A program made the position numbers and the translations under genes. Under the pieces are notes generated by a model. That model was given only the letters and a program-made list of their open reading frames with translations. It was not told where the DNA came from and made no database searches. 64,000 nucleotides of DNA from Lepidodermella squamata (lineage: Eukaryota > Animalia > Gastrotricha), in NCBI GenBank assembly GCA_047495785.1, contig JBLDXI010000013.1, positions 2,728,001 to 2,792,000 on the forward strand. The letters are read 5' to 3'. Within the stretch, counting starts at the first letter, position 1. Each line of letters opens with the position of its first letter. Of this stretch, positions 16,069 to 23,195 are shown piece after piece.

Positions 16069-17351
16069 TCAAAAGACCTAGTAATAATAAGAAAATGATA
16101 TCCGCACATCCATGAAGACTTCGGAGGTGATAGATAATTCTCATTACCCAATAGGGATTAGGAATTAGCCCTAATTTTATAACATAAGGTATAACGAAAC
16201 CTCCCCTCCTTAAAGCTCCGAGGTCAGGGGGGTAGGTGGTTCTTAAGAACAGATCAGAAGCAAGAAGGCATAGAAAGAAATAAGTTAGCTGGAATTAACT
16301 CCCACTAAAATACACGGGCAGAAGTTCGAAGTTGTATAGTGTACTTCATCCCCACCCCCGCGTCCTCATAATGAAGCATCATCACTAACAATGTGAAAAT
16401 GAGGTGAACAAATGAAGCAGAAAAAGCCATCAAAGAAAAACCCTTAGTCGGCATATGGAACATTTACAACATTAACACAGGCACTGTTATACAAATCACG
16501 CCTTCATGAGAGTGAATGGGGAAAGCTCAGGTGGAGATAGCTCAGAACAGAAAATTAGCAAGGAAGGGCACGAGGAAAAAGCATATCCTATCAATATTAC
16601 AAGTAGCTTTCAAGATATAGGCTGGAGCAAGAAAACAGAAACCGCGTTTCAAAAATCAACGAATCGGCAAAAAATCAGGACAATATGCACTATTTCAGCA
16701 ACATCAGAGCAGCATCGATCCTTCTGCATCGTGTGTCGTGGATCAAGAATAAGAAATCACGTGCAGAAAGATATAGGTATCCTTTGCCTTTCAGCCCGTG
16801 AAAGTTAGGAGAAAAATAGCCGAGAGATGGCAGCAGCAGGCAGCAGCAACATTCAAAATCACACGATTAGCGATTAAACGCCAAAAACCAACAACTTCAA
16901 GTGCCCGCGGTGCATATCCGTACAATGCGACCCCACATATATCGTTATATTAATGCAGACCGTAGTATGAATGAATTGACTCTAATATTATCATTATTAT
17001 TATATTATACCTGGTGACTTGATGACCTCGACACTAAATACAATATGAACTGCAATATGTATTTACTGGATTATTTTTGCACTTAAACATTCGCCAGATT
17101 TCATTATTTTGAATTTTGGCGGGCGGCGGCCGTTTGGTTTGAAGTTTCTTGTCGTCACCTTTCTCGGGGTTCCCAGGTTATCTCTTTGTCGGTCAGGATT
17201 ACGGCCGCAGTCGAAAGTTTACAATTGGTTTTGTCTAACTGAACTAGAAGCCCCCCTAGCCCCTAGGCGCTGACATCGAACAGTTAACCCAATTCAAGTC
17301 TTGGAAAGCTCTCATCATAATTATCTATCATCCATTTATCATAGACGTGTT

Positions 17352-19472
17352 ATGTTTGAGGAGGAAAATCACGGAGTGCTTTTGAGCAATCAAATTCGTG
17401 ATTTGCTGAGCGCTTTGCGCTCAAACATTCGGGCTAGCAAATTACCATCGTCGCTCTTTGAAAGATTGTTATCGGCCCTTTTCGAGTCCCATCAAAATGT
17501 CGAGCCTGTTGTTAATTTGATTGATTTTAACATCGATTTCGATGAAAGGGAAATAAGCCCGCAGCATCGTCTGTATTTACGGTTTCTCATTCGATTATTT
17601 GGATCTAAGCAGATAGAGTCCCTGAAGCCAACATATTTTTCGGCTGCCGAATATGGTTACCAAGACACTGCCATTGCATCAGCTTGGCTTCTAGCTTCTG
17701 TTCAAGTTGCGCGTAAAACCGATAATATCCAATGGATGTTTGAAACCAGCGCAGTTACAAACGTATTTTCCTATTTGAAAAACGACAATGTTTACGTTGC
17801 TCGAAATGCCGCTTCGGTTATTCAGTGTTTGCTGGCATCACTTTGTTTTAAGCTCAACAGGTCGGAGATGGTATCGGACATTTTAACCGTGCTGGTAGGA
17901 AATGTTTTGATGTTTCAATCTCCAGCGCGGAGCTTTCGATCCCCTGGCAATGGAATGACTTCCGGTAAAATACATGAGCATTGTGCATTTGAGTGTGCAA
18001 AACTATTAACGGAATTCATTGAAAGTCTTCATATCAATGGTCTTGACAACGAAGCTATTCGCCTGAAATATGGAGTTTCTCTAACTCCTGATGAATCTCA
18101 GCATATTTTGCAATTGGCAGTCAATTACAAGCGATTGCAAGACTGCTGTATTGCAATTTATTGCGCGTTTTACGAAAACAGTAGTTTTCCTGCAATTGAT
18201 TCGCTTGAACTAAATTCGAGGATAGCATTACGCCAGCTAAAATCTTCTGGCACGCTTGGACGGCCATCGCCTGTTTCATGTTGGAAGGTAGCTTTGCAGG
18301 TTCTCTCACCTTCCAATGACACGCGCAATTTGAAGATTGGTTCTTTTGTCGCTTCACTGGCGTCTCATGTTGAGTCCATTAAATGTGATCGCGAAGTGTC
18401 ATCCTTGATAGTCGAAGCTTGCTGTAATATTTTCCAACGGTTGGAATCTGAAAATTTGAGCCAAGATACAATCTATTTACGATTCATCGTTAGTTCGTCG
18501 AAAATGTTCATTTCCAGTGGAAGCATTCAAACGCTGATCGAAAGCAGAATTATTGATAACTTCATCAAGCTGTGCGAAGCCGCAGTATTGCAACGCGACA
18601 AAATGGTTTCAGATCGGTATTTAGTCGAATTGTTTCGCTGCTCCTCGGAAATGCTTGTTACTCTACTTCGATCGTCACCATGCGAAGACAGTTGGATTCA
18701 AGAAAAAACCCAGACCTTTCTACGCCTTTGTGTTGCTGTCGAAAATGCCGGTCCTCACGACTTCCCGGCGAACGTCAAGTTTTCAAGCGTTGAAGCAGCT
18801 GCTGCTCTCATTAATGTGTTTTCAGAGATAAGTTTGCCTGGTGGAACCGTTGAAGCTGCTGAAACATGGCTCTTAGCTGCTTGTCGAACTTTGGAAAAAT
18901 GCGCATCTTCTGATGTTCATCTCGAAGATTTGATCAATACTTACGGACACACAACTCGAGTTAATGTGATTAACCGCACTGTTCTTAAACAGTCATTTAA
19001 TTCTAACTTAAGTTCGCGTGTTTTCGATTCGTTGCCGCCTAATAAGCTGAACAGATTGACATCTTTGACCTTTCCCGGGCTCAGGCGAGCTGTAATTGCA
19101 TTGTTATTCTCTGCTTCACATTTGCCTCACAGCCGTCGCTCAGAAGCGTCAAGTTTGCTGGAATCGATGGTCCCAAGTCTAAATGAAGAATTCGATCCCT
19201 TCGTAGCTAATATAATCAACCACTGGTCGGCCGTTTGTCTCAATCACTGCGATAAGGATTGCTCGATGTTAAAAGATCTTCTCGAAAGCGGTTTCGAGTT
19301 AACCCCAGATAAAGCTGAGAAGGCTCCATTGACTGAAGAAATGGTAATCGCCACGGCCAAACGAGTTTGCGAAGACGTGCTTGCCTTTTTGCACTCACCT
19401 GATGACACGCCCTGCGTTTTTATTGGCGCATCTGATGGCGATCAGGATATTGTCGACTGCGAAGAATCTTGA
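17352..19472 (+). CDS. Intronless helical-repeat protein, candidate divergent BRAT1 (Integrator assembly factor)
   Basis: About 700-aa ORF. 'VFSYLKNDNVYVARNAASVIQCLL' resembles the remembered BRAT1 segment '[20 protein letters not shown]'; the acidic C-terminus GDQDIVDCEES resembles BRAT1 'GDEADCY'. The ORF is certain, the identity tentative. Confidence 0.5.
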   Translation: MFEEENHGVLLSNQIRDLLSALRSNIRASKLPSSLFERLLSALFESHQNVEPVVNLIDFNIDFDEREISPQHRLYLRFLIRLFGSKQIESLKPTYFSAAEYGYQDTAIASAWLLASVQVARKTDNIQWMFETSAVTNVFSYLKNDNVYVARNAASVIQCLLASLCFKLNRSEMVSDILTVLVGNVLMFQSPARSFRSPGNGMTSGKIHEHCAFECAKLLTEFIESLHINGLDNEAIRLKYGVSLTPDESQHILQLAVNYKRLQDCCIAIYCAFYENSSFPAIDSLELNSRIALRQLKSSGTLGRPSPVSCWKVALQVLSPSNDTRNLKIGSFVASLASHVESIKCDREVSSLIVEACCNIFQRLESENLSQDTIYLRFIVSSSKMFISSGSIQTLIESRIIDNFIKLCEAAVLQRDKMVSDRYLVELFRCSSEMLVTLLRSSPCEDSWIQEKTQTFLRLCVAVENAGPHDFPANVKFSSVEAAAALINVFSEISLPGGTVEAAETWLLAACRTLEKCASSDVHLEDLINTYGHTTRVNVINRTVLKQSFNSNLSSRVFDSLPPNKLNRLTSLTFPGLRRAVIALLFSASHLPHSRRSEASSLLESMVPSLNEEFDPFVANIINHWSAVCLNHCDKDCSMLKDLLESGFELTPDKAEKAPLTEEMVIATAKRVCEDVLAFLHSPDDTPCVFIGASDGDQDIVDCEES

Positions 19473-19525
19473 ATTTTGAATAATATTTTTAAGAAGGATT
19501 TCTTGGTTTCATCTAGATTTTTTAA

Positions 19526-20245
19526 ATGCATCAGCCGACAGAATGGACCCCGGTTTGTGGCGAGGAAGGAATGGTTGTGTGGACGGGAACAATGTTTGGC
19601 GTCTGCTTCGCCACGCTTCTGTTTAGCTACCTGGGACATTTCACGGCAATCGCTTGCACAGCTTTTTACCTGGGTCGATTCCCGAAGTCTACCGAAGTTC
19701 GCGAGCCGTTCGAACTGCCTAAATTGTACAGCTACTCGCTACAAGTCATTTTAACACTGCTGATTTGCGATCCTCTAATCAAACTAGTCATCGTCATTTT
19801 CGTCAGTGGCAAGCAGAATAGTTTTGTAGAAGACTTCAAGTTGATGCTAATGTTCACAACATGGGCATTGAATTTGACGTATTACCGACGATTGGCGATC
19901 AGTAACTATATTAAACTACCCGGTGTTGTGTCGATCACTGCTTCTATCACTTTTCTGTTTTTCGCCCAAATTCCGGTACTGCTGAGCACGGCCGACGCGC
20001 AAGATAGCTTGAACCTCGGGTTTTTGATCGCCTATCAAGTTTTGATGTTTTGTGCAATCGTCAATCTGGCCGCTCTGTTTTTCATCGTGAAGCGAACCAT
20101 GTTTCTACTGCCCGGCTATACCGACCTGACCGTGGAGTCAAATTTACCAGGTTCCACTCCTAGCCGGCCATTGTTCAATAACAATCGCCCAGAAACGTCA
20201 GACAAAGCTCCCGATGGTATCGACAACCCGGCTGAAGAAAAATAG
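19526..20245 (+). CDS. 5-TM membrane protein resembling the isolated TMD0 of ABCC10/MRP7
   Basis: N-terminal C-x7-W-x7-CF...H...AFYLG pattern (CGEEGMVVWTGTMFGVCFATLLFSYLGHFTAIACTAFYLG) like the ABCC10 TMD0; about five hydrophobic segments; in-frame TAA directly before the ATG; polar tail then stop. Confidence 0.65.
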   Translation: MHQPTEWTPVCGEEGMVVWTGTMFGVCFATLLFSYLGHFTAIACTAFYLGRFPKSTEVREPFELPKLYSYSLQVILTLLICDPLIKLVIVIFVSGKQNSFVEDFKLMLMFTTWALNLTYYRRLAISNYIKLPGVVSITASITFLFFAQIPVLLSTADAQDSLNLGFLIAYQVLMFCAIVNLAALFFIVKRTMFLLPGYTDLTVESNLPGSTPSRPLFNNNRPETSDKAPDGIDNPAEEK

Positions 20246-20614
20246 TCGTCTAATAAATTTGTCATCGAATACTTATTTATATTTTTTAGACTTGTAATCG
20301 AAATCGCTGAATCGTCTTTCTAAATTCGACGTCATGATTATTATTTGCTAGCTTGTTGGCGCTACCTTGATTTCTTTGTGAGCTGTATCTATTTATCTAT
20401 TCTTCAGTTCCGACTCGATCGCAATAATATGCAAGTTATAATCAGCAGTATGTAATTACGCAAATTTTTCAAAATTTATATCGACGCCAAGTTTTACAAC
20501 AAGAAACAAGTCAACGCCTTTGAAAAATGAGAAAATAAAGCTGAGTGTGTGCTAAACATGTTTTGTTGCTGCTTATTATAGACTATTTACCTATTCCTTT
20601 ATTTGCCTTGAAAA

Positions 20615-23195
20615 ATGACGGCATTCGAAGGTAATGTTTAGCATATTTACGAGCCTGGTTTTTGAACCTTGTCGCTTGCCTAGAAATGGGTGTGATGCCA
20701 GAAATAGCCGCTGCTGTTGAAGAAATGGGTTGGACGTGAGTTTTGCTGAAAGAAGGCATTTTGAAGCATCAATGCATTGTTGTTAGACTTCCCACTGATG
20801 TGCAAGCTGAAGCTATTCCTTTGATTTTGGGTGGTGGCGATGTATTGATGGCGGCTGAAACTGGTTCAGGAAAAACCGGCGTAAGAACCTGCTTTACATT
20901 CGGATTTTTTATCTTGAATTACGATATGAAACTAGGCCTTCTGCTTGCCTATCATCCAAATCGTGTATGAAACACTTCGAGATCTGAAAGAAGGCAAAGG
21001 CAAGACGGTAAGAGGTGGGGGCGGAAAGATTGAAGCCCGATGGCGTATGAATATTTACGACCGGGGTGATGCGATGGCGATTGATCTGGAACACGGTTTG
21101 CGGTGTCAGTCTCGTGATCAAGGCGGCTGGCACGGAACAAGGTTAACGAGGAAAAATGGAAAAAAAATCGTAATAACGTAATTTTCCAGGTGTATGAAGG
21201 GAATCTCGAACCACGGAGCGTATTACTACGAAGCAACTGTGACCGATGAAGGTCTTTGCCGCGTGGGTTGGTCAACAGCAGTAGCCGCTCTCGATCTAGG
21301 AACCGATCGTTGTGGCTTCGGCTTTGGCGGAACTGGCAAGAAAAGTTACGGGAAAGACTTCCAAACCTACGGCGAACCTTTTGGCCTCAACGATGTGATT
21401 GGCTGCTTCATCGACCTTGACCGTGGCGTTGTTGAATGGTCGAAAAACGGCCGTCTCTTCGGCAAGGCGTTTGATATTTCGCAGAATATGAGACGAGAAA
21501 CCTACTACCCGGCTTGCGTTCTCAAAAACGCTGAGCTTGAGTTCAATTTCGGCGAAACCCCGTTCAAACATCCGCCGCCTCAGCCGTACCAAGCGGTCAG
21601 TAAAGCCGCGGCTGATTGCGTGGCTTTGAACCCGAACACAACAGTGGCAGTTAAGGCGTCAAGCGGGCCGCCTAAGCCCAACGCACCCTACGCTGTTATC
21701 ATCGAACCATCGCGTGAATTGGCTGAACAAACGCTTCATGCTGTTCGTTCGTTCAAGAAGCATCTTGACCCGAAATCAGCCCCGCGTGAGCTACTATTAA
21801 TCGGCGGCGTCCCGGCTCGAGATCAAATTTCCGCCCTTGAAAACGGCGTGGAAATCGTTGTAGCTACCCCGGGCAAATTGGCCGATTTATGGCAGTCGAA
21901 AAACCTGCTATTCGAAAATGTTCGGTATTTTGTGCTGGACGAGGCTGATGGGTTGTTGCAGCAAAATTACGGCGATTTGATCCAGAAGATTCACGCGTCG
22001 ATTCCGAAAATTACGGTGGATGGGCGCAGGCTTCAGATGATTGTCTGCTCAGCTACCCTCCACTCGCCTGATGTTCGTCGAATGGCTGATCGCTTGATGC
22101 ATTACCCGATTTGGATTGACCTAAAGGGTCAAGATTCGGTCCCTGAAACAGTTCACCACGTCGTGTGTAAGGTGGATCCGTCAAGTGATGCGGGTTGGAA
22201 AGCGCTGTTTGGCAACAGAAACGCCGAAAGACGGATTGAGACTGATACGGTTCATGCCCAGGGTGATCGGCTTTCACCTCATGTTGAAACCAAAGGTAGC
22301 GATTTTTCGACTATTTTTTATTTCTCGATTATGATTTTTTCAAGAAATGCTCAGTGAGGCCGTCAAACTGCTAAAGGGTGAATACGTCGTTCGAGCTATC
22401 GATGCTATGAAAATGGACCAGGCGCTCATATTTTGCCGTACCAAACTCGACTGTGATAACATGGAAAATTTCCTCGTTGATCTGAGCAAGCGAAAACGCC
22501 CCGAAGACCGTTACACCTGTGTCTGCTTACACGGTGATCGGAAGCCTGAAGAGCGTCGCGCTAATCTCGAAGCTTTCAAGCGGAAAGAAGTTCGTTTCAT
22601 GATTTGTACCGACGTAGCGGCTCGTGGTATCGATATTTCGGGTCTGCCTTACGTTATCAATGTTACGTTACCCGACGAAATCCAGAACTACGTTCATCGT
22701 ATCGGCCGTGTTGGTCGGGCTGAACGAATGGGCCTTGCAATCTCTCTTGTCTCGAGTGTACCTGAGAAAGTGTGGTACCACAGCAATTGCCCTGATAAGG
22801 GTAGAAATTGCCGGAATACAAACCTGGTTCGCTATTCGAAATATGCATATAATTAAGGTAATTTTCTTGTTTTTAAGGTGGAAGAGGGTGGCTGTTGCAT
22901 GTGGTACAACGAGCCGAATTTACTCAGTGATATTGAAGACCATCTCGGTGTAACTATCGACACAGTCGACCCGGATTTTGTGATTCCTGTCAATGAATTC
23001 GATGGCAAAGTTGTGTATGGTCAAAAACGCCGGTCTGACCCAACTGGAGGCTATAAAAATCACGTCGCAAACCTAGCAACATGTGTCAGCGATTTGGGTC
23101 GGCTGGAAAAACGGGCTCAGGCTATTTATTTACACATGAAAAGTGATAAAGGAATCTGGCAAGCTGCAGCAAACGGAAATTCCAAAAAACCATGA
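20615..23195 (+). CDS. DDX1: ATP-dependent RNA helicase DDX1 (multi-exon)
   Basis: [14 protein letters not shown]...[31 protein letters not shown]; SPRY insert ([17 protein letters not shown]); DEAD; SAT; [19 protein letters not shown]; [11 protein letters not shown]. Confidence 0.97.

Follow-up and report, generated by a model that had tools for sequence, protein, structure and literature searches.

TMD0 is a five-helix accessory domain with its N terminus out, and it is normally fused to the front of long ABCC transporters. Its role is among the least settled questions about these proteins. Several pumps can transport without it, yet it is essential for the coupling of SUR to Kir6 and for the trafficking of other transporters. 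To our knowledge, the autonomy of TMD0 has so far been shown only with artificial truncations, and the natural TMD0 of SUR is always fused to its core.

The isolated TMD0 of SUR1 suffices to assemble with Kir6.2 and sets the open probability (PMC3047609). The TMD0s of TAP are autonomous scaffolds that recruit tapasin (PMC3437018). The TMD0 of TAPL binds LAMP-1/2 and directs lysosomal targeting (PMC6199259). Human ABCC13 is reported to be a truncated transporter of an unusual kind and a pseudogene that is degenerating in several mammalian lineages (PMC3777468).

The locus described here contains an expressed gene for a TMD0 that is not fused to a transporter. In the reading that we favor, it is a functional free-standing TMD0 gene whose nearest kin is the TMD0 of the lineage's own ABCC10/MRP7-like protein. 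It would have arisen by duplication of the 5' part of that gene and have been kept separately. It would be trans-spliced to a spliced leader and encode an autonomous membrane module. We give this reading a probability of roughly 0.78.

Locus and gene boundaries

The window is the whole 64-kb stretch of DNA that was analyzed. It is part of a compact animal genome with introns of about 50 nt, and its other genes include TMC, HECT, Sushi, and LRR genes. The TMD0 gene lies between two neighbors on the same strand.

17301..19472, + strand: upstream gene, a 723-aa ORF of no recognizable family, covered by RNA contigs.
19526..20245, + strand: coding sequence of the TMD0 protein, a single exon with 239 aa plus TAG, from the ORF call, homology, and RNA contigs.
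20616..22856, + strand: start and first part of DDX1, with SPRY and DEAD (Pfam), its own first exon, introns of about 50 nt, and GT..AG joints in RNA.

The TMD0 ORF is intronless. It starts with ATG, ends with TAG at 20243-20245, and has an in-frame stop upstream. It begins 53 nt past the stop of the 723-aa ORF and ends 370 nt before the DDX1 start codon. DDX1 is not part of the TMD0 gene, and its first exon (20616-20631) is spliced to about 20682/20684 in RNA. The original prediction of an intronless gene of its own, bounded by a stop upstream, was borne out, and RNA runs unspliced over the stop codon.

The 239-aa protein does not have the architecture of a long ABCC transporter, in which TMD0 is joined to L0, TMD1, NBD1, TMD2, and NBD2 in one polypeptide. 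An L0-TMD1 profile of ABCC10-like proteins gave no signal when all six frames of the 64-kb window were searched (best E value, 2.6; 3.9 bits). Traces of L0, TMD1, or NBD were found in none of these frames, in agreement with the earlier statement that the window holds no TMD1 or NBD. A TMD0 profile run over the same six frames matched this ORF only. Because RNA crosses the stop codon unspliced and the 64 kb contain no core signal, the protein is a homolog of one transporter domain and is not a transporter.

The 723-aa upstream protein had no match in Pfam and none in the PDB. Its syntenic ortholog in a related species (contig L001, described below) shares only 28% identity with it. Both proteins keep an acidic C-terminal end (D.DQD..DCEES). 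Judged by sequence, it is a fast-evolving orphan that is coupled to the TMD0 gene in both species.

Homology to ABCC10-like TMD0s

A Pfam scan of the protein gave no match to TMD0_ABC (PF24357) at an E value of ≤1, and the gathering threshold was not reached. The only match was a sub-threshold one to MTABC_N (E value, 0.37; 10.7 bits with a cutoff of 29.1). ABCC10-like TMD0s are themselves marginal for PF24357. One of them (P0004) has an E value of 0.015, and another (P0007) carries PF24357. PDB sequence searches with the protein and with a six-sequence profile returned nothing relevant.

An exhaustive HMMER search with a two-sequence profile against 1.84 billion representatives retrieved five proteins. 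These were the ortholog P0001, P0002 (E value, 1.9e-8), P0003 (7e-6), P0004 (6.4e-5), and the fragment P0005. In P0002 to P0004, the matched part is the extreme N terminus and ABC_membrane follows behind it, so these are N-terminal pieces of long ABCC transporters. Relatives of P0004 (P0015, P0025, and P0026) carry the source names "ABC subfamily C protein 10," "ABCC10-like," and "Multidrug resistance-associated protein 7." An independent HMM was built from 23 ABCC10-like TMD0 segments, with the window protein and its ortholog left out. It scored the window protein at 70.6 bits and the ortholog at 79.6 bits; among 1000 shuffled versions of the window protein, the top score was 8.2 bits.

A search of the ESM Atlas by shape gave no match above a TM of 0.5. 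A search of the same resource by features gave short clusters bearing TMD0_ABC. These clusters were not counted as free-standing relatives, since they may be fragments of ABCC first exons.

In alignments with the fused ABCC10-like TMD0s, W7, C11, G12, W19, C27, F28, A46, G50, and R51 are invariant. The motif W..VCG....W....G.CF...F, with its Cys pair, is common to the fused TMD0s and stands in register with them. C11-G12...C27 is the counterpart of C6-G7...C26 of SUR1. In SUR1, the C6-C26 disulfide at the entrance of TM1 is conserved, and its mutation impairs channel biogenesis (PMC5344670). By this correspondence, C11 and C27 of the window protein form a putative disulfide.

Predicted fold and topology

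An AF2 model was made from six sequences. It has a mean pLDDT of 65, with values of 70-88 in the membrane core. It contains five long helices and a disordered polar tail. Residue ranges are given in parentheses, and identities are to the ortholog.

19556..19606, + strand: codons of Cys11-Gly12 to Cys27, the extracellular Cys pair at the TM1 entrance, invariant in the alignments.
19595..19675, + strand: TM1 (24-50), AF2 helix, 70% identical.
19676..19720, + strand: cytosolic loop 1 (51-65, RFPKSTxVREPFxLP), 87% identical, with its topology predicted from the TMD0 superposition.
19721..19804, + strand: TM2 (66-93), AF2 helix.
19823..19903, + strand: TM3 (100-126), AF2 helix, 27/27 residues identical.
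19916..19990, + strand: TM4 (131-155), AF2 helix.
20006..20107, + strand: TM5 (161-194), AF2 helix, 50% identical.
20108..20242, + strand: polar disordered tail (195-239), pLDDT of <50, 24% identical, containing GYTDL.

Nearly all of the top 50 Foldseek matches were TMD0-bearing ABCCs. VIA-align placed residues ~10-195 of the model on residues ~5-200 of AtABCC2, rat and human MRP2, MRP1, MRP3, SUR1, SUR2B, and Ycf1p. On the solved TMD0s, Z was 15-18 and the rmsd was 2.7-3.4 Å over 165-180 residues. A Foldseek-independent search of 48,161 chains ranked AtABCC2 first (Z, 16.4) and SUR1 second (Z, 13.2; model residues 11-193 on 6-203). The next fold in that search was otopetrin (Z, 11.6). The predicted structure is a five-helix bundle that superposes on solved TMD0s. 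From its superposition on TMD0s of known topology, the protein is predicted to have its N terminus outside and its C terminus in the cytosol. The 239-aa protein ends in a variable linker just before the L0 helix (FFSRL..W..PLL.KG), which in the alignment is present only in the fused proteins.

The original prediction of an ABCC10-like TMD0 is thus matched by strong similarity in both profile and structure searches. It is extremely unlikely that this is an unrelated five-TM protein that resembles TMD0 by convergence on a helical bundle. Such a reading would fit the sub-threshold Pfam result for TMD0_ABC and the middling Z values that helical bundles often reach, as the otopetrins do here. However, the sequence homology is significant without any structural input. 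The motif and its Cys pair are in register with TMD0s, and the TMD0 matches span the entire domain with Z values some 5 units higher than that of the next fold.

Transcription and trans-splicing

RNA data were retrieved as Logan contigs, which are assembled, and rare isoforms may stay hidden in them. Runs X1 and X3 were taken as RNA because their contigs skip the GT..AG introns of DDX1. Run X2 was taken as DNA because the same introns are not skipped. The features at the ends of the transcripts are as follows.

19479..19498, + strand: 3' end of the upstream mRNA, with AATAAT at 19479-19484 and poly(A) addition after 19498.
19514..19516, + strand: TAG trans-splice acceptor, 18 nt past the upstream poly(A) site and 9 nt before the ATG.
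20246..20498, + strand: 3' UTR of the TMD0 gene, with RNA contigs to 20411 (X1) and 20498 (X3).

An RNA contig from X3 carries 13 non-genomic A's behind 19498, and this site is 14 nt past AATAAT. An RNA contig from X1 that matches 19515-19794 begins with 17 non-genomic letters (AATTTGATTTGTGTCTA). These letters were not found anywhere in the 64-kb window. The junction is ambiguous by 2 nt, as the AG may belong to the leader, and the visible 3' part of the leader is therefore AATTTGATTTGTGTCTA, possibly with AG added. The foreign 5' sequence at the TAG acceptor is the signature of spliced-leader trans-splicing.

The gap of 18 nt from the poly(A) site to the acceptor suggests an operon-like pair. 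The upstream 723-aa ORF is probably its first cistron, with the TMD0 gene as the downstream member. A non-genomic leader at an acceptor shortly after an upstream poly(A) site marks the downstream gene of an operon resolved by spliced-leader trans-splicing. Both are present here, and no polycistronic precursor was seen in the contigs.

Contigs from X1 (~20131-20411) run over the stop codon without a splice. Among the contigs of X1 and X3, no splice joint out of the TMD0 ORF was found. RNA depth collapses between the 3' UTR of the TMD0 gene and the DDX1 start at 20616. The 3' end of the transcript, for which the original prediction had asked confirmation, was followed unspliced past the stop codon as far as 20498; the exact poly(A) site was not seen. 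In X1, the RNA depth is seemingly higher over the TMD0 gene than over its neighbors, although contig depth cannot rank expression.

The ORF might alternatively be the first or an alternative 5' exon of a larger gene, with its stop codon bypassed by splicing to distant ABC-core exons. Long ABCC genes of this lineage do open with a large exon that contains TMD0 (the ORF on contig L004 of the relative), and RNA in the form of contigs can miss rare isoforms. We nevertheless consider this very improbable. Transcripts spliced from this exon to a distant ABCC core, which the original prediction had allowed for, did not appear: RNA contigs cross the stop codon with no splice, and neither RNA run shows a joint out of the ORF. 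In the ortholog, the stop falls at the corresponding position (233 versus 239 aa). DDX1 is the next gene downstream on the same strand in both species (370 nt away in the window), and the 64 kb contain no ABC-core signal in any frame.

Two variants were observed in the public data. Inside the TMD0 gene (19515-20500), X1 and X2 show about 3% divergence from the window, with variant letters in common. The variant letters that the two runs have in common point to divergent haplotypes or strains of the species in public data. In the upstream gene, 56 bases (19132-19187) are missing, with a single T in their place, from X2 contigs at about half depth and from X3 RNA contigs. The gap has GC..AA ends and is not an intron. 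It is a net deletion of 55 nt, which would shift the frame of the upstream gene. This deletion allele may reflect a true haplotype or an artefact of assembly.

Ortholog, synteny, and selection

A word-indexed protein search retrieved one relative, P0001. It contains 233 aa and is 62% identical to the window protein over 95% of the query. The contigs that encode it (L001-L003) were retrieved from three ENA metagenome assemblies. The gene order in this relative is that of the window. A 678-aa orphan is separated by 65 nt from the 233-aa gene, which is followed by DDX1 and then by CLC on the other strand. A scan of JGI metagenome contigs for more orthologs gave 350 pattern matches, of which none was confirmed. 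The free-standing gene is known from two species, and its age and spread are poorly bounded.

Synonymous sites between the window gene and its ortholog are saturated (pS, 0.82), and pN is 0.24 in the membrane core. All 27 residues of TM3 are identical despite this saturation. Conservation falls from cytosolic loop 1 (87%) through TM1 (70%) and TM5 (50%) to the C-terminal tail (24%). Between the same two species, DDX1 is 80-90% identical. The TMD0 protein is far better conserved than the upstream orphan (62% versus 28%). The low pN at saturated pS, together with the conservation of TM3 and the loop and scaled to the neighboring genes, indicates clear purifying selection. A TMD0-only ortholog under purifying selection had been named as a check on the original prediction, and P0001, in the same synteny, is such an ortholog.

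These data bear on whether the gene is a decaying, transcribed relic of a duplicated ABCC gene, like human ABCC13, that has no function of its own. Truncated ABCC genes do exist, ABCC13 among them (PMC3777468), and the C-terminal tail of the window protein evolves fast. However, both species keep an intact ORF despite saturation at synonymous sites, and the low core pN and the nearly unchanged TM3 and cytosolic loop 1 are not those of a decaying sequence. The protein is kept much better than its orphan neighbor, synteny and length are kept as well, and no remnant of L0 or TMD1 lies downstream. A relic is therefore highly unlikely.

The tail had been described as polar, with a YxxL motif (GYTDL). 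The tail is polar and GYTDL is present, but the YxxL motif is not conserved. Only GY is kept in this region, and the ortholog reads GYSRQV. GYTDL was rejected as a YxxL sorting signal because the ortholog lacks the motif.

A full-length ABCC10-like gene in the assemblies of the relative

The relative also appears to encode a full-length ABCC10-like protein. P0003 was retrieved from the same assembly as L001 (ERZ23486764), and its ORF on contig L004 extends upstream through a complete TMD0. A member of its 90%-identical cluster, P0033 (588 aa, from ATG), is encoded on contigs L007, L008, and L009. On these contigs, P0033 is followed by an NBD exon and then by a second ABC_membrane exon, which together make a full-length long ABCC gene. 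On L007, this one gene contains TMD0-L0-TMD1-NBD1-TMD2.

The full-length gene and the free-standing ortholog were present together in ERZ23486764, ERZ23486787, and ERZ27332993. The contigs of both genes have a GC content of 0.378 each, and their RSCU values correlate (r, 0.87). L004 contains an intron of the 50-nt class. From this co-occurrence and composition, L004/L007 and L001 appear to come from one organism.

The TMD0 on L004 is the closest relative of the free copies, with 36% identity to P0001 (E value, 1.7e-30). Tree building places it together with the free copies (support, 100/99), on long branches for which long-branch attraction is possible. A word-indexed protein search with the ABCC fragment from L004 returned only itself.

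The start of the ABCC10-like gene on L004 (2447-2476) is out of frame by one base relative to P0033 (L009, 2447). This offset is probably an assembly error, and it accounts for the gene caller's start of P0003 inside the TMD0. The ABCC10-like gene is immediately preceded, on the same strand, by a P5-type ATPase gene (ATP13A-like; L007, 2425-5817; L004, 94-1758).

The original prediction had suggested that the locus might be half of a split transporter. Fission of an ancestral ABCC10-like gene would then have left TMD0 and core encoded separately, with the free TMD0 docking in trans on its core to rebuild a long ABCC. No ABC core is nearby. The split itself is made less likely by the pump of the relative, which is intact with its own TMD0 (L007) in the same three assemblies as the free ortholog. 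In TAPL, a separately expressed TMD0 binds coreTAPL and rescues lysosomal targeting (PMC6199259). The window protein ends just before the L0 helix, which is a natural domain boundary. A second, TMD0-less core could exist, although the split reading gained no support from the data.

We consider gene fission improbable. The full-length pump of the relative keeps its own TMD0, which favors a conserved partial duplicate over a split transporter. With only 36% identity to the TMD0 of the pump, the free TMD0 is an old, diverged paralog and not a recently detached piece. The free TMD0 of TAPL associates with the core and not with the full-length protein (PMC6199259), so an intact pump would offer no partner at the canonical site. 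ABCC10 is usually single copy in surveys of arthropod genomes (PMC3724490).

Proposed origin and function

In the favored reading, a conserved partial duplicate, only the 5' part of an ABCC10-like pump gene was most likely duplicated, before the two known species diverged. The duplicate would have been kept since then as a separate gene that lacks the L0 lasso, TMD1/2, and the NBDs. It would form a tight gene pair with the upstream ORF and be transcribed as the second of the two. The 5' end of its mRNA would be made by spliced-leader trans-splicing 18 nt past the upstream poly(A) site.

We infer that the protein cannot pump, as it lacks both an ATPase and a translocation pathway. By analogy with TMD0s that act alone, it is probably an autonomous membrane module for interaction, as an adaptor, or for targeting. 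Of the roles named in the original prediction, a new accessory or trafficking subunit would fit best. The likely surfaces for contact with a partner are the invariant TM3 and the conserved cytosolic loops. SUR1 E128 and F132 are reported to couple TMD0 functionally to Kir6.2, and their residue numbers are similar to those of the conserved loops, a likeness of numbering only. Candidate partners would be an ABC core that lacks TMD0 or a membrane protein of another kind.

It is possible, though unlikely, that the protein serves, as a dedicated auxiliary subunit, some partner that is not the parent pump, for example an ion channel, a trafficking receptor, or a different transporter. If this were true, it would be a natural case of TMD0 as a portable adaptor, which is so far represented only by SUR-Kir6 and by engineered constructs. 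It would also suggest a route from an MRP-type pump to a regulatory partnership of the SUR type.

Two species of an obscure lineage limit the practical weight of the finding. A naturally kept TMD0-only gene beside an intact parent pump would be a clean system for learning what TMD0 alone binds and does. It would also show that an accessory domain of a membrane protein can become an independent subunit in the course of evolution.

Comparison with known systems

(a) ABCC10/MRP7-like TMD0 (PF24357). The window protein contains the same five TMs, the N-terminal Cys motif, and a cytosolic loop 1 of about 15 residues. It differs in that it is a complete 239-aa polypeptide with its own start, stop, and mRNA, and it scores below the PF24357 threshold.

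(b) SUR1 and SUR2 TMD0. The predicted fold is the same (Z, 13-16; model residues 11-195 on SUR residues 6-203). The TMD0 of SUR2B, as the separate 198-residue chain 7mjq_G, also has the fold of the window protein. In contrast, the window protein is only 10-13% identical to these domains and lies outside the SUR clade, and no Kir partner is implied.

(c) TAP1/TAP2 and TAPL (ABCB9) TMD0s. The likeness is one of functional analogy only: these domains fold and act alone when they are expressed separately. They differ in having four helices, in belonging to ABCB half-transporters, and in showing no detectable homology to the window protein. They have been separated from their transporters by experimenters only.

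(d) ABCC13. Like the window gene, ABCC13 is a natural gene derived from an ABCC gene without the ATPase part. It is degenerating, whereas the window gene is under purifying selection and has a clean end at the TMD0 boundary.

No paper on a natural TMD0-only gene or on fission of a TMD0 gene was found in the literature. What is new at this locus is a known domain in an autonomous genetic form, and ABCC13 is its closest natural precedent.
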